Source: Paragordius varius
Lineage: Eukaryota > Animalia > Nematomorpha
Direction of reading: 5' to 3'
NCBI GenBank assembly: GCA_964247055.1
Contig: OZ176055.1
Span: forward strand, 2,170,001 to 2,234,000
DNA length: 64,000 bases
Shown: positions 9,496 to 64,000 of the stretch, piece after piece
Layout of the letters: each line of letters opens with the position of its first letter
How positions within the stretch are numbered: position 1 is the first letter of the stretch
Position numbers and translations under genes: made by a program
Notes under the pieces: model-generated
Seen by the model: only the letters and a program-made list of their open reading frames with translations
What the model was told of the DNA's origin: nothing
Database searches by the model: none

Positions 9496-14550
<5,055 letters not shown>

Positions 14551-40397: not shown

Positions 40398-41112
40398 TCA
40401 AATAATTTTTTGAGCGATTTCAAGCAACTTTGTACAATCAGCCGCGCCACGATTTTGTCCTCGGCTCAGTGTTGTACGTCGCATTGTGTAACCCGAAACA
40501 GGAACTGTTATTCTTTTTCCCAAGGGGGCGTCTTTATCATCGACCAAAGCGATGACATTTTCATCATATTGGGGTATCATGGGTCTCTGTCTTTGCCTAC
40601 AACCTAAATATATTATATGAACGGTTGAAATCGAAAAAAATCGATTTTAGTAAGCTACAAAGTTATGAGGAAAATATTAAAATGCAGTCTAACCAAAAAA
40701 CTTTCTCAGGCACAGAAATATCCTTAAAAAAACCAAAATATACTAAAATTATTAGGTTTGATTCCATAACCCTATAATCTGACTTCTTTGTCCCGAATTT
40801 TTGTAAAAATTACGCGTCAATATGCCTAATTTGATTATTTCTAAACCGTATTACTATACTTTTATTTCGAAAACTTTACAAAAAAAATTATTATTTATGT
40901 GTGATGAGTTACCTATTACAATAGCTTTTCTTTTTTGTCCCATTATAGTAACTAAAATACGGTCTCCGATCCCGGCTTTTTTTGTATGATGATCGTAAAC
41001 ATGAATACATCTAGCATTTTTCCCAACTAATTTAGCTTCCTGAGCCAATTTGCTATCATCAACCACGTCACAGCGTGTCGTAAAAACGACATGATTTTGA
41101 GGGCGAGTTAAA
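40398..41112 (-). CDS. MRPL14: Mitochondrial ribosomal protein uL14m; exons 41112-40913 and 40603-40398, candidate first exon 43189-43161
   Basis: TRCDVVDDSKL...RCIHVY...AGIGDRILVTIMGQKRKAIVIG|CRQRQRPMIPQYDENVIALVDDKDAPLGKRITVPV...KLLEIAQKII matches the uL14m pattern. There is no in-frame ATG directly upstream of the 41112 acceptor. Confidence 0.85.
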
Positions 41113-41636
41113 CTTTTAGTTACAAAAACAAAATAATTTAAGGGTTTTTAAAACAAAAATATGCTTTTAAAATAAACGGTTTTTTAAAAAATTAATCTAT
41201 GGACCCAATAATTATATATAAAATTTATTACAGATACGATATATAGGTAAATTAATTGATATCTAAAGAGTTTGAAATGAAAAATTCTTGTGAATCAGTT
41301 TTGGACTCAAATTTATTGTTTGATGTAATAAAAAAGGGCGCCTTTGATCAAATGGAGAAAAGAAATGTAAAATAATTGCCCGAAAACATTAAAAATTTAA
41401 TTTGCGATGTTTGACTCAAAATAGGTTGTGATTTTTAGGAAAAATCCCTAAAATCTATAAATGCAAGAGTAATACATAATCAAACAAGTGTGTGGTTGCG
41501 TATACTGCCAACATTGTTGATTTGTGGTATAAATTACAAAATATATCAGTTAAAAAAACATTATAAAGTTCATATATAAAAATGTATAAATCATGATTAA
41601 AATGCCGGTGCACGTTTTTAACATCATCCATCCATT

Positions 41637-43016
41637 TCATTTTTTAAACAGGGTACGTTTATGTTTTGAAAATTGATGTCTTCGAACCATTGCATTGGTA
41701 CTTCTGGTAGAATTATTGTTATTTGCATTTTCAGAAGCCAAATCACCGGTAAGGTTGGTTCCACTCCAACTTTTGCTTTTAGTTTTAAAGTGTCGCAAAT
41801 CATTTTTATGGTCACTGTGTAGCATAGGCTTATACCCACGCGGTTCGCAGTGCTCGGCATACGATTCGTAAAAGGCCTTGTAGCCACCCTCCAAAACATA
41901 AATTTCTGGGTAAGTTAACCGAGGATAACTTTCTGAATTGATTTGGCGATCATAATTTCGGAAAAAACTGTAAAGCCGAGGTCCACGTTCTTGTGAATAT
42001 TCACAATGGAAGATATAAATATGATTATTATTATTATTGGTCTTATTACCAACGGATCTTTTAATCGGTGCAACATTTTCATCGTGATAAGTTGCTTCGC
42101 GGGTTGGGAAAAAGCGCTGTATAAGAGTGTCCCTGGTAAAGATATTAATTGCATTTTTGATGTGACCACCCTCATACTCGTATGGAAAACGACAATCAAT
42201 AATCGTGTAAGCGTCGACATTGGGAAACTTATTATTTAACAAATCATTTACGGTTTCAGGTCTCAAGGCCTTTAGCTCCGGATTTTTGGGCGAGGTGGTT
42301 AACGGAAGCAGATGTTTGCGTGAAAAATCACCGATGTAATCATCAACGGGCCCAGTACTTAAGTCATGTTTGATAATTTTATTTGAAGAGGGTGTATTCA
42401 ATTTTGGTGAATTACTAAGCTGAGGAATAACAACCTGATTTTTTAGATCATTATGATGAATTTTGTTGGAAACAGATCTACGTTGTTCATTGGTCGAACG
42501 ATTTTGATGCTGATTACCAAGTATAATGTTTTTAATTTCACCCAAACAACGCCGTGGTTGAGCTTGTTGAATACGGCCAAAAGCGTTAAGTTTTTTAACT
42601 AATGCGGAAGATTGGGCGAAGGGACTTTGGACTGTAGGTTTTGTTATTGATACGTTGGGATGCTTTGAAATAATTTTCGGTACTACAGGGGACGAATGAG
42701 CCTCGGGGTGCCCGATAATATTGTTTGCGCGGGGTGATATTATTGAAGGATGAAAATTATCAATGATTTGATTGATTGAATTGTAAGGTGACAGTAACAA
42801 TTTGGCGTTTTCAAACATTTTTTCGTTAAAAGCACAGGACATGTTATGTGATGTATTTAAAACATGATTCAATTCAAAATCATTATCAATTTGAGAATCA
42901 TTATGTGATGTTATATGAGCAAAATGTTTAAAAGAAGGCGTAGCTGGACTATAGCTACGATTTAATGGAATACCTTCCATTCGAAAAGATAAAACTGATT
43001 CACAAGAATCGTTCAT
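41637..43016 (-). CDS. CDC25: M-phase inducer phosphatase Cdc25/string, intronless CDS
   Basis: 459-aa ORF with IGDFSRKHLLP, IIDCRFPYEYEGGHIKNAIN, catalytic HCEYSQERGP (HCX5R) and YPEIYVLEGGYKAFY. Confidence 0.95.
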   Translation of the reverse strand: MNDSCESVLSFRMEGIPLNRSYSPATPSFKHFAHITSHNDSQIDNDFELNHVLNTSHNMSCAFNEKMFENAKLLLSPYNSINQIIDNFHPSIISPRANNIIGHPEAHSSPVVPKIISKHPNVSITKPTVQSPFAQSSALVKKLNAFGRIQQAQPRRCLGEIKNIILGNQHQNRSTNEQRRSVSNKIHHNDLKNQVVIPQLSNSPKLNTPSSNKIIKHDLSTGPVDDYIGDFSRKHLLPLTTSPKNPELKALRPETVNDLLNNKFPNVDAYTIIDCRFPYEYEGGHIKNAINIFTRDTLIQRFFPTREATYHDENVAPIKRSVGNKTNNNNNHIYIFHCEYSQERGPRLYSFFRNYDRQINSESYPRLTYPEIYVLEGGYKAFYESYAEHCEPRGYKPMLHSDHKNDLRHFKTKSKSWSGTNLTGDLASENANNNNSTRSTNAMVRRHQFSKHKRTLFKK

Positions 43017-56323: not shown

Positions 56324-58339
56324 ATGGAATTATATTGTAATAAATCCGCGATGTATGGCGATGTTAGTTTAGCGTCACCCTATCATCAACTTAGTCAATT
56401 ATATGTTGCAATGGACTGTAGCAAGGATAAATTGTTAGATTCTACAGTGTCCTACTTTAAAACCTATATAACACCAGTAATTAATTTATGTGGCATATCT
56501 TTGGACTTTCTTAAAGTATATCCCAATTTAAAATAAGTTATTTAATTTAGATCCACAACTATTATTTGACAATGAACATATCAAATCATTAAGCCAAAAT
56601 ATTGTCAGACATAATAATCAAAGCGCTAAACTGATGATGATGGTTTTAGGTACCAATGACACACGACAAATATTGCTAAATTTGATCAAGCAAAATACAA
56701 ATCAAACAAATTATTTATCTAATCACATCGTTTTGACCTATTATCCTTTTAACGTTCCCATTTATAAATTGATAAAAACGCGATACTCATCTTTTGTTCC
56801 ATTAGTGTCGCCAAAATCTAACAATATTGATGAAATTAGTAATTCCAAATTTGACAACGTGTTTTTCAAAGTATTTCCGTACGATTTTCATCGTTTAAAA
56901 AACTTATCTTATATTTTAAAATCCATGATATCATTGATACAATTGGATAATGACGATAAAAAAGATGATTTGGATAATAAATTTCCCGTTATGGATGCGT
57001 TTGACATAAATGGGTTTGTTAAATCGGCATCAAATACGTTTTCTACTGAATATATCTCATTTGATAATCTTCACATTGGTGATAGAGATAATATCAAAAC
57101 CATGTCTCAATTAATAAATTCTTGTGTAGCAGACGACAATAAATGCCCATTATCACGTAATAAAAACTCTCAACAATTATCGGTAAATTTTGAATAAATA
57201 CAAATTAATCGTTTAAATTTTAAACGCGTTTTATAGTATAGGATTTAAAAATTTTAAATATTTTAGACAGTTAAATTTTGATTATATTTATATGAAATAG
57301 AGTAATAAACCAAAATCATTCAATGTTACACTCAACATTAAATATTTTGTTGATGAAATGGATGCAAAATTATCTGGATGGGTGGATTTAGCAATGAAAC
57401 ACATTGGAGATATTCTAATTAGACGGCTTATTCGTCGTAAATCTTTCATCTTTTAGTTTTATCAAAAAAATATTTTATATATTTTTAGTCATCTGAACTG
57501 CTTTTATATTTTAAATAATTTATAATATTTAGGATTTTGACATATTATCTATTTTTTCACTGTTGTTAGCTAAAAGGCTAAAATCGATTCAATTCAAAAT
57601 CCAATCTTGTTCGCATTTCACCATCTTAAACGAAAGTAACAATCTAAGACAATTGGGTTACATTCAAAGAGATAACCAGTTAATACCCCAAAATTCAAGC
57701 TATATCCGATTTTTAGCCGTTCCAAATCTACAAAACGCTACCAATTTTTCAGATACGCTAAATCATAATGACCAAATTTTAAATTCATATGAGAATCGAG
57801 AAATCGTGACATGGAATGATTCAAACAATGTTTCACAAGAAAAGTAAAATTTGAAAATACCCTTTAACTGTATAATATGATAATCACATAATGACGCAAA
57901 ACTTTTTTTCAAAGAATTCTTATCTAAATTCTCAATTAAAATATAATTATTAACGATCTTCTAAACTTTTCCATTTTATTTCAATAGGGAGGGAAGTATA
58001 CAAGATTTAAGTTGTGCAAACGCGTATAATTTGCTAGATTCAAATCATATACTGGAAATACCAATGTGCAATGTTGACTCCATCGATTTAAATATTTCAA
58101 CATGCGAATCCAATAATACATATGATATAGCGAATCCAAATTATTTGACTCATATTAGTTTATTAACAGAAAATGAAATTTTTGAACTAACAAAAAATAA
58201 GGAAGTAGAAATTGAAAGTCAAAAGATTACAGAAACATCGGACTCTAAAAATAATGATGTCTTTGACCATATTTCTCCAAACCTATCGATTAAAATTCTG
58301 CCGAATTTTTGTCGGATTCAAAAGTTGGAATACGAATAA
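56324..58339 (+). CDS. Uncharacterised protein; about 4 exons
   Basis: Coding-like segments 56324-~56515, 56551-57182, 57533-57842 and 57988-58339. The last two junctions are GT-AG and in phase; the first junction is unresolved. Confidence 0.55.
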
Positions 58340-58528
58340 ATTATATGCACATATATTTTCAAATTTATGTATGTATAAATATGCGGCATAAAAATTCCAG
58401 GTAAATTTGTAAGTTATGTGCTTATTTAACAATTTGGAAAAAGTGATTAAAATTAAAATATCACCGGTATTGTGTTTAGAAAGCATTTCAGAATATTTGT
58501 TTAGCATCAAGCTATTTTGTGCTTACGG

Positions 58529-61500
58529 TTAGAATTTGCCTTCACACATGATTGGTGGAAAAAATTTATCACATTGCTTATAGGAGTTTGGGCGAGGCAA
58601 AAAATCATCCATCTGTTTAGCTTTCTGTATTTTATTGATTGGCATAAAATCATCGAGTGTTTTATTATTGCCACTTTTGTTGGTGTTATATACATCGTTT
58701 CCTTCATGGCGGTATTTGAACCATCTTTTATGGAGAGTTAACATATTCCTGGGACCATTGTAATATTTTAGAAAAGAACGGGCCGCTGATTTTGTAAATG
58801 TAGGAGTCGATAAACCCAATCCTTGTTTAGAACCGTAAGTACTTAAAATTTTGGGATGTTCTCGGCTCGACAGATTATTATTCATATATGTATATATCAT
58901 GGCAGATAACATGAGTAAGATAATAAGCATAACACTAATCATAATTGCGATCATATTATTTGGTGCAAAACACCAAGTTTTTTCATCCATTGACCAATTG
59001 TTTGGGTTACCTTTAAGGTTGTTGTCTAAATTGGAGAAAGATGATTTAATCGAGGTTTTACTGCCTACGGCATTTATATTTTGTAATTTTTTTTCCAAGT
59101 CTGACCGCGAATAAAAGAATCGATCTAAATTATAAATAAAATAATCATAGTTATTTTAGAATAAATGATGTTTAAATTTTGCTTAAAAGATTATACCATC
59201 ACTTAAAACTGCTCCTTTATCTCCTGGTATCATAACAGCGATAGAACTGAATAGATTGACCGTTTTTGCCATACTGATGGTTGAATTTGTGTTATTCAGC
59301 CCTGATATATTATTTTTATTAGCGAGTTCAAACATAGCCAAATTACTTTCGTTTAGGGGCAAAAATGTATCATCGATTGGCACATAACCGTTATGGATTT
59401 TGGTTGAAAGGTGTCTTTTAAAAATTTTGTTGGAGAAGGGCTTGTCAAGGATAGAAGGTATGGCAGATCTTTTGGATCTATCATTTGAGTGATTTGGGGG
59501 AGGTGGTCTATTACCCATTAAAGGTAGTCTCATTTCTACACCTTCATCATTTCTATCTCCTAACATAATGTGTTCTTCCGGATTTTGATTCAATAGCAAA
59601 GATTGTTCTGTAGGACGGCCATTCTCGCCAATTTCATCATTCATTACATCTCCCATGAATTCACCTCTGTAACTGCTAGTGGGATTACCATACTCTGGAG
59701 CCAAATTATTAGGGTTCATTACATTAACTCTTCGGGGTTGAGACCGGGATCCTGGTATCCCTCCATTTGATGGTCCGGAGTTGAGATTATAGTTGGGATG
59801 ATTTGCGTAAAACATATCTCTTGCTCCCTTTGGCGCAGCGGCATAATTAATGTATCGTTTGACGTCACAAGATGGCTAAACAATTAACAATGAGTGAGTA
59901 TACATTGCTTTCATTATTATTGCCAGATAGCTTAAAAATGAAAGAGGCCATCTAATTGGCCCATAGTTATTATTTTCGCTTTTTACTGCTATCATCCAAT
60001 AAAACTCTTTTCTTTTTAAGCTATCTAGTAATAAAAAATAGGTAATGTTCTACTCTCACTATATATTATATTAAACTAACCACTAAAATATTATAGTTTA
60101 ATTTTAATATGGTTTTAATCCAAATTGTAAACGATGTTATCTATGATATCAAGTAAGCACACTCTACCTTGGGACATTCTTTGTAACATATTTGGACATA
60201 GCAATCGAAATAAACATTAGGCACATCAGGGAATTTGAAAACGTTGAATGGCGCATAAACATGTTTCTCAAACGTGTCATAATTGGCACCTTCTGTCATC
60301 TTTTCAAGCACTCTTTCACTCCGGCTTTGTGAACCAATTAAATTATCATTTTCTGGACATCTTAATCCAAAAAAAGTTATTTAAAAATATAAAAAAATAT
60401 ATAGTTTCAAGTAGTTCATATATGATATCCCTTATATACCCATTTTCATCGATAAGTCTGATCTTCTCATTGCCCATACCATCGTGTGCATAACAATCAA
60501 ACAAGTACAGATCAAAAAGACCTAAGCAATAATAATTGAATATAAATTTTATAAAAACTTTATTTGTATTATAAGCATTAACATATCGCTTAATAGACTT
60601 TTATGTTAAAATATGGCCACCTTTTTTATCATACACCATAACATCAAGGGTTCCATTCTCTCCAAGCAATAAGTATTTGGCCGGATTACCGAAAGGATTT
60701 TCGCCTTCGAGTACACGTAACCAGGCATCGGGAACTATATTAGCCCTTGCTTTTATCTTAGTAGTTTCAAATTTTCTATAAATTTTGAATGGTAATAATA
60801 TTTTTTAATGAATATTAGGGTTGTTTAATTAATCAATACTAAACCTGGGAATGAAGCCGGTGATGTGATGGATGTATGATAAAACGATATGCCAAATTTA
60901 ATATATCAATAAAAAGGGTCGAATTTTCACAATCCTAGAACTTATAAAATGTAAAACGACGTACACACTATCTACTACCTTTTTTATCTTTAAATGTAAC
61001 GTCTAATACCCCATCACTACCGAGCTCAAGCATATTCCCAGGCTTAGAAAATGGATTTTTCCCTGGAATAATATTTAATCTAGCTTGAGGAATGATATCA
61101 GAACGAGATGAAAAGTTTTCGAAAGGAACTCTATAACAAAATTGTATTTATAAAGAATGAATATCTATATTGAAAATAATATATTTTAATCCAAAAATGT
61201 AATCGGTCTAACTTTATTTAATATGTCGCAAATATACTTATTATTACTCGAGGTTTCTATAAAGGTATTTATGGGATATGTGCGCCGTATAGTCGTCAAA
61301 CTATGATTTTTAAATTATTTAAGTTTATGAATGATTTTTTAGAACCAGGAATAAAAAAGGGACAACATCGAAATTCATGCATCACACAGCATCCACTGCT
61401 TTATTCAGAAAACGACAGTTAAAAAAGTCCCATAAGAATAGAAAATAAAAAAGTCTCTAGTCTAAATGCTATTTTCAAGCTTTGATGCTTAACCAACAAG

Positions 61501-62021
61501 CATAAATAAAGTTTTTTTAAAGTTTCGTTGCAACTCTTCAAATAAGTTTATCGAGTAAAATAAATTCATACGTAACATCCAATCCACCGTTGACCCTTTT
61601 GACTCCGGTGGTGTCGATCTCACATGTAACATGGAAGGCTTTATCTTTGCCCTCTAAAACGCCGTTTTTAGTTGAAAACATGACAATGACTGTATTGTGA
61701 AATGATAAAACACCATTCTCCAATTGCTTAACCTAATGTCAAATATTTTAATTAATGACATTATATCAACATAATCTATATAAAGAATAGGGCACATTTT
61801 GCGTTTTCATGTAAAATTTATGAAATTTACCTCGTTTTCCTGAGCAGTGCCGCACCCGTCCAGAGGTAGTCGAATAGATACTTGAGTTTCACTGTTTCCA
61901 TTCACACGACAATATTCGCTTTTGTAATAACCTTTGGAGTAAATGACACCATTGAAAGGTCTGGCAAAGGATAATATTATAGCCATACTTTCGTCATATA
62001 TGTCACATTGAACATTAATAT
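58529..62021 (-). CDS. ZP-domain single-pass membrane protein (cuticlin/dusky-like); 5' exon(s) not resolved
   Basis: Exons 62021-61831 (VQC...PFNGVIYSKG...C...LDGCG, ZP-N), 61732-61572 (NTVIV...AFHVTC), alternative exons 61130-60979 or 60775-60621, 60521-60440 (DCYAHDG...LIDENG), 60360-60168 (CP...FKFPDVPNVYFDCYVQICYKECP, ZP-C), 59875-~59200 (furin-like RSKR) and 59100-58529 (TM IAIMISVMLIILLMLSAMIY). Confidence 0.88.
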
Positions 62022-62663
62022 CTAATATCATATCGTGGAATACACATAAAAATAATATTTAACATGTTTTTTTACTATATACATTTGTAAAGTTAAAGCA
62101 ATTTTATGCATTTAACACAAAGATAAATTATTTTTAAATTACTACATAACATCCAACAAAAGACCACCCGAGTAATTTTTTGATTATCTAATGCTAATCA
62201 TGACACTAAACCCAAATTAAAATCGTAAGTTAAACAAAAAATATCATTTAATAATTTTACAATAGCAACTAAAAAGGCATGGAATGAATTATTTAAACCT
62301 CTTTCATAAAAATAATTTTAAATTTGAAGCGGGAAACAAGGCCGGTAAGGTTCAATGAATATGCTTGTTATGAGAAATGAATCCCTCACAAACATTAAAC
62401 AAGATTTATGCATTTTAAAGCATAATATGTAAAAATTCATATGCTAAAATTTCACCATAATGTTTTTGATACGGATATAATATGAAACATTTTTAGTTTA
62501 TTTAAAATATGAAAATGAAACTACATAGGTGGGACATTTAAATTAAGTATTATAGATACCAATGAAAAATAATCAACTGATACAGTTTGAACAACTTAAA
62601 ATACAAAATCAAACCGTTTCTATTTAATTCAATTCCTTTACCATTTTGTGTTATAGTGTAATG

Positions 62664-64000
62664 CAGTGATACTAACCGCGGCCCGCGAGCCGCATGCGGC
62701 CCTAAGAGAGATTTAAAATTGCCCTATCACTATATTGATAATTAAATTATTTTTTTATTAATGAATTTTAAAATGCACATAAAATTTCGCTTATTATAAT
62801 ATTAATTTATTTTCTTCAGATTTACTTTTGGTAATTTTAGTTTTTACCCAATTCGAAATGTAGAAAAATTTTCCTATATTAAAATGATTTCAAAATTTTG
62901 GCACACGTCTATTTATTTTCTTTATTTTGAAATTTTTATTGGATTCCTTTTTTGTATTTAAGCAAGCTTTTCGCCAAAACTTGCATGTACATATTCTTTT
63001 CATTGCTATCCTGCATCATTTTTTATAACTCATTCCCATAAAATATTTTGCAAATAAACATTAAATTTTAACCTGTTTTTTATAGCATAAAATTAAATTA
63101 TATTCCTATTTTTTGAAAAAATTTACATAATATTTAAACATAAATTCAAATGATGACATATAATGCTAAACAACGTAAATTATCCGATAAAAATTTCCCT
63201 TTAAAAAAGAATGGGAAGAAAAATTCTTTGTCTATTTAAATTTTTGCCAATGAATAATACCACTAAAGGAAGTGATTTTCTCAAAAGAATTAACACTTTT
63301 TTAGATAATAATGGTAGAAATTGGTTTCGATCCGCACAGATGGCTGTCCCTCTATGAAACCAAAGGATTATTCTTCTTTTGAAAAACAAATATAATTTGC
63401 AAAATATTTTATCCTTTCACTGCTTTATTCATCAGAAAAACTTGGTTTCGCGGTAAAAGATGAATCACTCAATAAATTAATTAAAACGGTTGTGGATATA
63501 GTTAACCATATCCGTGGCAGAAATTCTACCGCCGTAAATTCAAAAACCTTCTGAAAGATATCCACAGTGAGTCTGATGATATTCTTTTGTACATCGCTGA
63601 GATATGGCTAAGCCTTAGCGAAGTATTAAATAGATTTTTTGTTTTAAGACATGAAATTCTATCATTATAAAAGATAACAGAAAGTTTGACGAGAAAATTA
63701 ATAGTGACAAATGCTGGGTTTTGCCTACCTTTGCAACATTACTTATAAACTTGGTATTTTTAATACGTCATCAAGGGAGCAAAATAACAATTTAATTTGC
63801 TAATCAAATATTTGCTTTTGAAGAAAAATTTATTATATATAAACAAGATTGCATAAATAAACACTCCTATATTTTTCAACACATACCGCGGAGACTAATT
63901 AATAATAGACAAATCATTTAACATTTTTAGCTAATGAGATGAAATTTAGATTTCAAAAATTAAGAAATATTAAAAAATGCTTAAAATTCGTTGAAAATCC
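62664..64000 (+). mobile_element. Decayed hAT (Buster/Charlie-type) DNA transposon: left end plus frameshifted transposase
   Basis: Left end CAGTGATACTAACCGCGGCCCGCGAGCCGCATGCGGCCC at 62664. Broken frames at ~63210-63960 give LPMNNTTKGSDF, TDGCPSM, HCFIHQ, VVDIVNHIR and EIWLSLSEVLNRFFVLRHEI, which are hAT catalytic-core motifs, interrupted by stops and frameshifts. Confidence 0.8.

Follow-up and report, generated by a model that had tools for sequence, protein, structure and literature searches.

A tandem exon pair, probably mutually exclusive, and a predicted exon-derived RNA stem in a hairworm cuticlin-type ZP gene

We describe two adjacent, homologous exons, A and B, in a hairworm gene that appears to encode a cuticlin-type ZP protein, within the 64-kb stretch of DNA analysed here (the window). 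Exon A (60979..61130, 152 nt) and exon B (60621..60775, 155 nt) lie on the minus strand, as do all other parts of the gene given below, and are separated by a 203-nt GT-AG intron (the A-B intron, 60776..60978). Each would supply an alternative version of the same segment, the second half of the linker between the ZP-N and ZP-C domains and the first ZP-C strands. Judging from the gene structure and the pattern of codon changes, we think it probable that both exons are used, and that they are used mutually exclusively.

Both exons are bordered by AG and GT and have the same phase; each opens with 1 nt that completes a split codon and carries 1 nt out (AG|A...AAG|GT), and their 3' ends are alike (GATAAAAAAG|GT). 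An initial annotation of this DNA had given these coordinates, lengths, borders and ends together with both translations, all of which matched on re-reading, and it had placed the flanking junctions correctly at the donor 61572 of the upstream exon (...GTTAC) and at the acceptor 60521. The homology that it had claimed was borne out by BLASTP, in which the two proteins were identical at 20 of 43 residues (47%, E 9e-15), so that the tandem homology is far beyond chance. The divergence is greatest in the linker half, which has a net charge of -1 in exon A and of +3 in exon B; beyond it, both exons have the common core I-x-P-x-A-x-L ... G-x-N-P-F ... L-x-L-G-x-x-G-x-L-D-V. When the 64-kb window was searched in six frames with tblastn, A and B were the only copies of the exon (E 1.5e-10), and there was no third sense copy.

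Because the lengths of A and B are each 2 mod 3, a translatable mRNA results only when exactly one of them is present. Local joining with short flanks showed that the A-only and B-only joins are open and in frame, that the A+B join runs into a stop 7 codons into B, and that skipping of both exons leads to a stop after 2 codons. The earlier proposal that either exon fits in frame, while both together shift the frame, was therefore confirmed, and the rule that exactly one exon must be used is fully supported by the gene structure.

The host gene and the place of the exon pair

The exons around the pair point to a membrane-anchored cuticlin-type ZP gene. On the upstream side, E1 (61831..62021) carries Cys 1-3 of ZP-N and, scanned as a single exon, matched Pfam CUT_N above the cut-off (28.8 bits, cut-off 27), with a ZP-N E-value of 0.0016. 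E2 (61572..61732), the second ZP-N exon, carries Cys 4 and the first ~12 linker residues and ends with 2 nt of a split codon before the donor GTATGA; read from E1 and E2, all four ZP-N cysteines are present. Downstream of the pair, the constitutive exon E5 (60440..60521) encodes a ZP-C strand with Cys 5 (FDC motif), and E6 (60168..60360) contains the remaining cysteines. A Pfam scan of E6 as a single exon gave a ZP-C match to profile positions 95-132 of 133 with E 1.1e-4, its score of 22.8 bits lying below the cut-off of 24.6, and a CUT_C match with E 2.9e-4.

In translation, the tail exon E7 (59197..59875) shows a putative furin-type site, RSKR, ahead of a hydrophobic stretch that may be the external hydrophobic patch, and the probable donor of this exon is G|GTATAA at 59196; no Pfam family was found for it in a single-exon scan. 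A candidate donor of the same exon at 59202 was dropped, its GT being lost by a G>A change at 59202 in a second sample (described below). The last exon, E8 (58529..59124), reads in translation as a transmembrane helix, a cytoplasmic tail and a stop codon. Taken together, the order from E1 to E8 appears to follow the layout usual for precursors of polymerising ZP proteins.

Exons A, B and E5 gave no Pfam match when scanned singly, even at E 10, and searches of PDB sequences and of the ESM Atlas with single exons gave no match either. The pair was therefore placed in the domain by position, cysteine spacing and Pfam back-projection rather than by a direct domain match. The ZP-C model start, projected back from the E6 match, falls at about residue 14 of exon A/B, and Cys 4 and Cys 5 are about 76 residues apart, close to the distance of about 80 residues in uromodulin (UMOD). 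Based on these two measures, A/B most likely comprises the second half of the ZP-N/ZP-C linker, followed by ZP-C strand A (the internal hydrophobic patch, IHP) and strand B. The initial description of the pair as the start of ZP-C thus stands by position and by back-projection from E6, but it finds no direct counterpart in Pfam, which neither exon alone matches.

The linker and the start of ZP-C had also been said to govern ZP polymerisation. This is established for uromodulin, in which the linker and strand A with its internal hydrophobic patch have a role in polymerisation, and in whose filaments the same elements take part in a donor-strand-like interlocking of subunits (PMC7737619). The predicted hairworm protein resembles the uromodulin/ZP3-type ZP module (PMC7737619) in its ZP-N with four cysteines and in its putative ZP-C, furin-type site, hydrophobic stretch and membrane anchor, as well as in the spacing of Cys 4 and Cys 5. 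The swapped exon would stand at the position of linker beta1 and strand A/IHP, a mapping that is based only on spacing and Pfam back-projection. The hairworm gene differs in the spacer between ZP-C and the furin-type site, which at about 130 residues is unusually long.

A signal-peptide exon upstream of E1 was not found in the window; it could be located on the far side of the high-copy repeat starting at 62514, or past the window end. Such a missing 5' end would also fit a gene that as a whole is an unexpressed pseudogene. We consider it very improbable either that the gene is such a pseudogene or that both exons are joined through an unrecognised phase-correcting splice site. All eight exons have kept open frames and canonical splice sites, and all ZP cysteines are retained; about half of the tail-exon variants listed for a sample that is 3-4% diverged are synonymous; and a product with both exons would carry the linker twice, and likewise the first strands of what is one beta-sandwich domain.

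The surroundings of the gene showed two further features. Directly upstream of it, in the window interval 62514-64000, contig depth rises from ~300 to 200,000-300,000 (~700-fold) in all samples, marking a repeat of very high copy number in which internal joints and variants are frequent. On the plus strand, open frames of 70, 187, 94 and 102 aa at 56324-58339 converge on the 3' end of the ZP gene; they showed no significant Pfam family and are noted here as a neighbouring gene without a family match.

Age of the duplication and constraint on both copies

We compared A and B codon by codon. Among the 43 alignable codons, 22, 9 and 28 differences were found at the first, second and third positions, respectively, with pN 0.376 and pS 0.743. 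The synonymous sites are saturated, indicating that the A/B duplication is old. Under the hypothesis of a neutral copy, about 51% of second positions would be expected to differ, as opposed to the 21% observed (binomial P 4e-5), so that long-standing neutral decay of either copy since the duplication is rejected. The codon-position pattern shows long-term selection at the protein level on both A and B, in agreement with the initial view that both are under selection; the recent death of one copy may still be compatible with this comparison. The probability that a 50-codon frame is open by chance at the local intron composition is 0.014. The GC content of exon A (0.349) and of exon B (0.387) resembles that of the other exons (0.337-0.404), as opposed to 0.21-0.28 in the introns.

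A search for sequencing runs that contain the locus found no RNA run. The contigs of the four runs examined (X1, X3, X4 and X5) are DNA and run through the introns, as does, for example, the X3 contig over 60592-61237. Among the variants listed for other samples, only one lies in exons A and B, at 60989, and it is synonymous. For the last exon, E8, the variants listed for the second sample comprise 10 synonymous and 9 nonsynonymous changes; over both tail exons, about half of those listed are synonymous, as expected of a moderately constrained gene.

The second sample itself (X3, X4; same species label) showed about 3-4% substitutions against the window over 58400-62500, plus indels, among them the loss of 42 nt (61381-61422) from the intron that precedes exon A. 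It may represent a diverged strain or a cryptic species. Run X5, which has another organism label, contained pieces identical to parts of window positions 58454-62678 at the very low depth of 3-8 (60793-60963, for instance, showed no differences), suggesting mislabelling, contamination or very close kinship.

These data bear on the possibility that only one exon is still used, the other being a recently silenced duplicate without visible decay, so that the gene makes one protein. We regard this as unlikely. Frames are open and splice-site pairs intact in A and B alike, both have an exon-like GC content while the introns are far more AT-rich, and the conservation of second positions shows that both were retained for most of the time since the duplication; the sole listed variant in the pair, being synonymous, points the same way. 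On the other hand, protein searches gave no transcript or gene model with either exon, and the RNA pairing described in the next section also speaks in favour of silencing.

The protein searches were as follows. A word search of proteins with the A+B alignment gave no match, and an A+B profile run with HMMER against 1.84 billion representative proteins gave no orthologue; its six matches were rejected as spurious, all of them being bacterial repeat proteins (DUF5801, cadherin, B_lectin, DUF5122). A word search of proteins with a 230-aa query from the tail exon gave no match.

We also looked at a neighbouring locus. A single-exon Cdc25 gene (459 aa) has its best relative in Gordionus sp. m RMFG-2023, with 56% identity. 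It is nested in the MRPL14 gene on the same strand (window 40398-43016), and Cdc25 has an annotated position within MRPL14 in the Gordionus genome as well (OX940787.2 of GCA_954871325.2, locus 9790-13337), showing that this arrangement is conserved between two hairworm-type genomes. The 21-kb Gordionus Cdc25/MRPL14 locus, whose AT-richness is similar to that of the window, contained no ZP exon.

A predicted RNA stem over the 5' splice site of exon B

The A-B intron contains an arm (60835..60900, minus strand) that is an antisense, degenerate copy of the 3' end of exon B together with the exon B donor and the first 13 nt of the intron that follows. Its counterpart, the exon B arm (60608..60678, minus strand), begins 58 nt before the end of exon B, runs over the 5' splice site G|GUGGCC and reaches 13 nt into the intron. 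Local alignment of the intronic arm to exon B scored 40, compared with 20.1 +/- 3.1 for dinucleotide shuffles, none of which reached it (0/500), and the five other intron/exon combinations scored at background. The arm is about 17% diverged from exon B in a 36-nt core, its GC content is 0.364 against 0.241 in the remaining A-B intron, and a search for it as a repeat revealed no further copy in the window.

As RNA, the two arms can pair over 55 bp (18 GC, 32 AU, 5 GU) with an energy of -56.4 kcal/mol, compared with -28.6 +/- 4.2 kcal/mol in shuffles (0/1000), the arm boundaries having been chosen post hoc. A less biased test, in which the whole intron was allowed to pair, gave -60.1 against -49.6 +/- 5.4, a value reached by 1 of 60 shuffles. 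The 55-bp stem was also present in the unconstrained MFE fold of a 609-nt region (z -2.75). All 7 positions of the splice site G|GUGGCC are paired in the stem, and the exon B donor, GTGGCC, is the weakest in the gene.

As a control internal to the gene, the 3' arms of seven exons were paired with every 71-nt intronic window (1,122 pairs), giving a median of -18.5 and a first percentile of -33.4 kcal/mol. In this control, the best intronic partner of exon B reached -57.2 kcal/mol, compared with -27 to -33 kcal/mol for every other exon, and no stem comparable to that of exon B was found for exon A (best -32.5 kcal/mol) or for the constitutive exons. When the intronic arm was paired with the homologous part of exon A, the energy stayed at background (-32 to -36 kcal/mol). 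A 14-nt antisense match between the arm and exon A (60839-60852 / 61034-61047) was not above chance (44/500 shuffles). We observed that this match covers 13 of 14 nt (CTAAGCCTGGGAAT), and that the arm looks mixed, in part A-like and in part B-like.

The initial annotation had called for a search for docking and selector pairings in the flanking introns. The search yielded one strong stem, over the 5' splice site of exon B, but no set of the Dscam type. Because exon A is without a comparable partner, the A/B system is not a Dscam-type docking/selector system.

The stem could equally well go with a permanent silencing of exon B. If one copy is silent, it is more likely to be exon B, because the 55-bp stem takes in the 5' splice site of this exon and no donor in the gene is weaker. 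The pairing of the whole of G|GUGGCC speaks for this reading, and so does the low divergence of the antisense arm: at about 17%, it dates the inverted copy to long after the A/B split, perhaps too recently for decay to have become visible.

A further possibility is that the duplex between exon B and the intron is a substrate for A-to-I editing, with the intronic arm as the editing complementary sequence, or that it is the neutral trace of a recent partial duplication in inverted orientation, and that other factors set the choice of exon. We consider this improbable. Imperfect pairing between exon and intron over some 55 bp is what is classically seen at ADAR recoding sites, and there is only one pair of arms, as opposed to a docking site and one selector per exon; both points would suit this explanation. 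However, the duplex covers the 5' splice site itself, which is hard to square with no effect on splicing, and the GC content of the arm is well above that of the remaining intron.

Proposed mechanism and comparison with known systems

We propose the following course of events, in which both exons are used mutually exclusively. An old tandem duplication produced two versions of one ZP exon. Transcripts that include both or skip both would meet an early stop and presumably be removed by nonsense-mediated decay. The gene would thus make two proteins with different polymerisation interfaces, of opposite charge in the linker half (-1 in A, +3 in B) and of 47% identity elsewhere; they may also differ in their assembly and be specific to certain stages, as the initial annotation had supposed. 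The choice between the exons is probably biased by the 55-bp stem that the antisense remnant of exon B in the A-B intron can form with the 3' end of exon B. This stem would bury the 5' splice site of exon B and loop out its 3' splice site, so that exon A would be the default, while inclusion of exon B would depend on opening of the stem.

In its full form, the proposal is that a hairworm cuticle ZP gene swaps its polymerisation interface by mutually exclusive splicing to make two matrix subunits with differing partner or assembly specificity, and that the switch is an inverted partial copy of the exon in the preceding intron that locks the 5' splice site. We offer this complete chain tentatively, as a possibility that we would not yet call probable. 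If it is true, an exon-derived lock would be a route to the regulation of mutually exclusive exons unlike that of the docking/selector model.

Egg coats, the uromodulin filament of urine, the tectorial membrane and the cuticles of moulting animals are all made from ZP modules, and structural work has put the interdomain linker and ZP-C strand A at the centre of filament assembly. A natural swap of exactly this segment, if true, would be a ready-made experiment on the interface and on polymer specificity. It would also hint at how one matrix gene can be retuned in a parasite whose cuticle differs greatly between its larval, parasitic and free-living phases. For practical purposes the finding will gain more than limited value only once RNA from this little-studied phylum reveals the use of both exons. 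The exon-derived antisense arm is a simple case, open to testing, of the way in which a tandem exon pair may come under the control of RNA structure, and it is a mechanistically interesting extra of an otherwise known type of exon pair.

As to that type, criteria for predicting mutually exclusive exons were given by Pillmann et al. 2011 (PMC3228551), and the A/B pair agrees with every one of those at the sequence level, namely adjacency, length, phase, splice sites and homology. Like the tandem-duplication pairs known from that work and from the human landscape of Hatje et al. 2017 (PMC5740500), A and B lie within one would-be intron, are of near-equal length, have the same phase and show protein homology. 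They differ in that the host is a nematomorph ZP-module gene and that the pair is known from genomic sequence alone. Enforcement by frame shift is an accepted class of regulation of mutually exclusive exons (PMC5740500), and the pair resembles this frame shift/NMD class in that the lengths of A and B are not divisible by three and that joint inclusion shifts the frame. Of 6,541 human candidates predicted by homology, 1,399, about a fifth, were verified by RNA-seq (PMC5740500); set against this rate, the present pair is compact, old and demonstrably constrained. In open-access literature text, we found no description of a mutually exclusive exon pair within a ZP module.

With the docking/selector systems (Dscam, 14-3-3 zeta, srp), in the origin model of Ivanov and Pervouchine 2018 (PMC6071210), the hairworm gene shares a long-range RNA pairing that lies beside a tandem exon pair and is born of local sequence duplication. 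In those systems, however, one docking site pairs with a selector beside each exon, whereas here a single stem connects the intron to the body and 5' splice site of exon B. The arm here is an inverted copy of the exon, and not a duplicated intronic stem arm.

Stem-loops are known to mask the 5' splice site of alternative exons, as in tau exon 10. The likeness to tau is that the 5' splice site of the regulated exon is base-paired, which would limit access of U1. In the hairworm gene, the pairing partner is found in the preceding intron, about 160 nt upstream, so that the 3' splice site of the exon would be looped out as well, and the stem, at about 55 bp, is far longer than the tau hairpin. Finally, exons 9 and 10 of C. 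elegans let-2 (collagen IV) are stage-regulated and mutually exclusive, documented by RNA and genetics, with regulation by protein factors. As is probable for the hairworm gene, a matrix protein of a moulting animal is there made with one of two alternative exons; let-2 differs from the ZP gene in protein family, in this documentation of its exons and in its regulation by protein factors.
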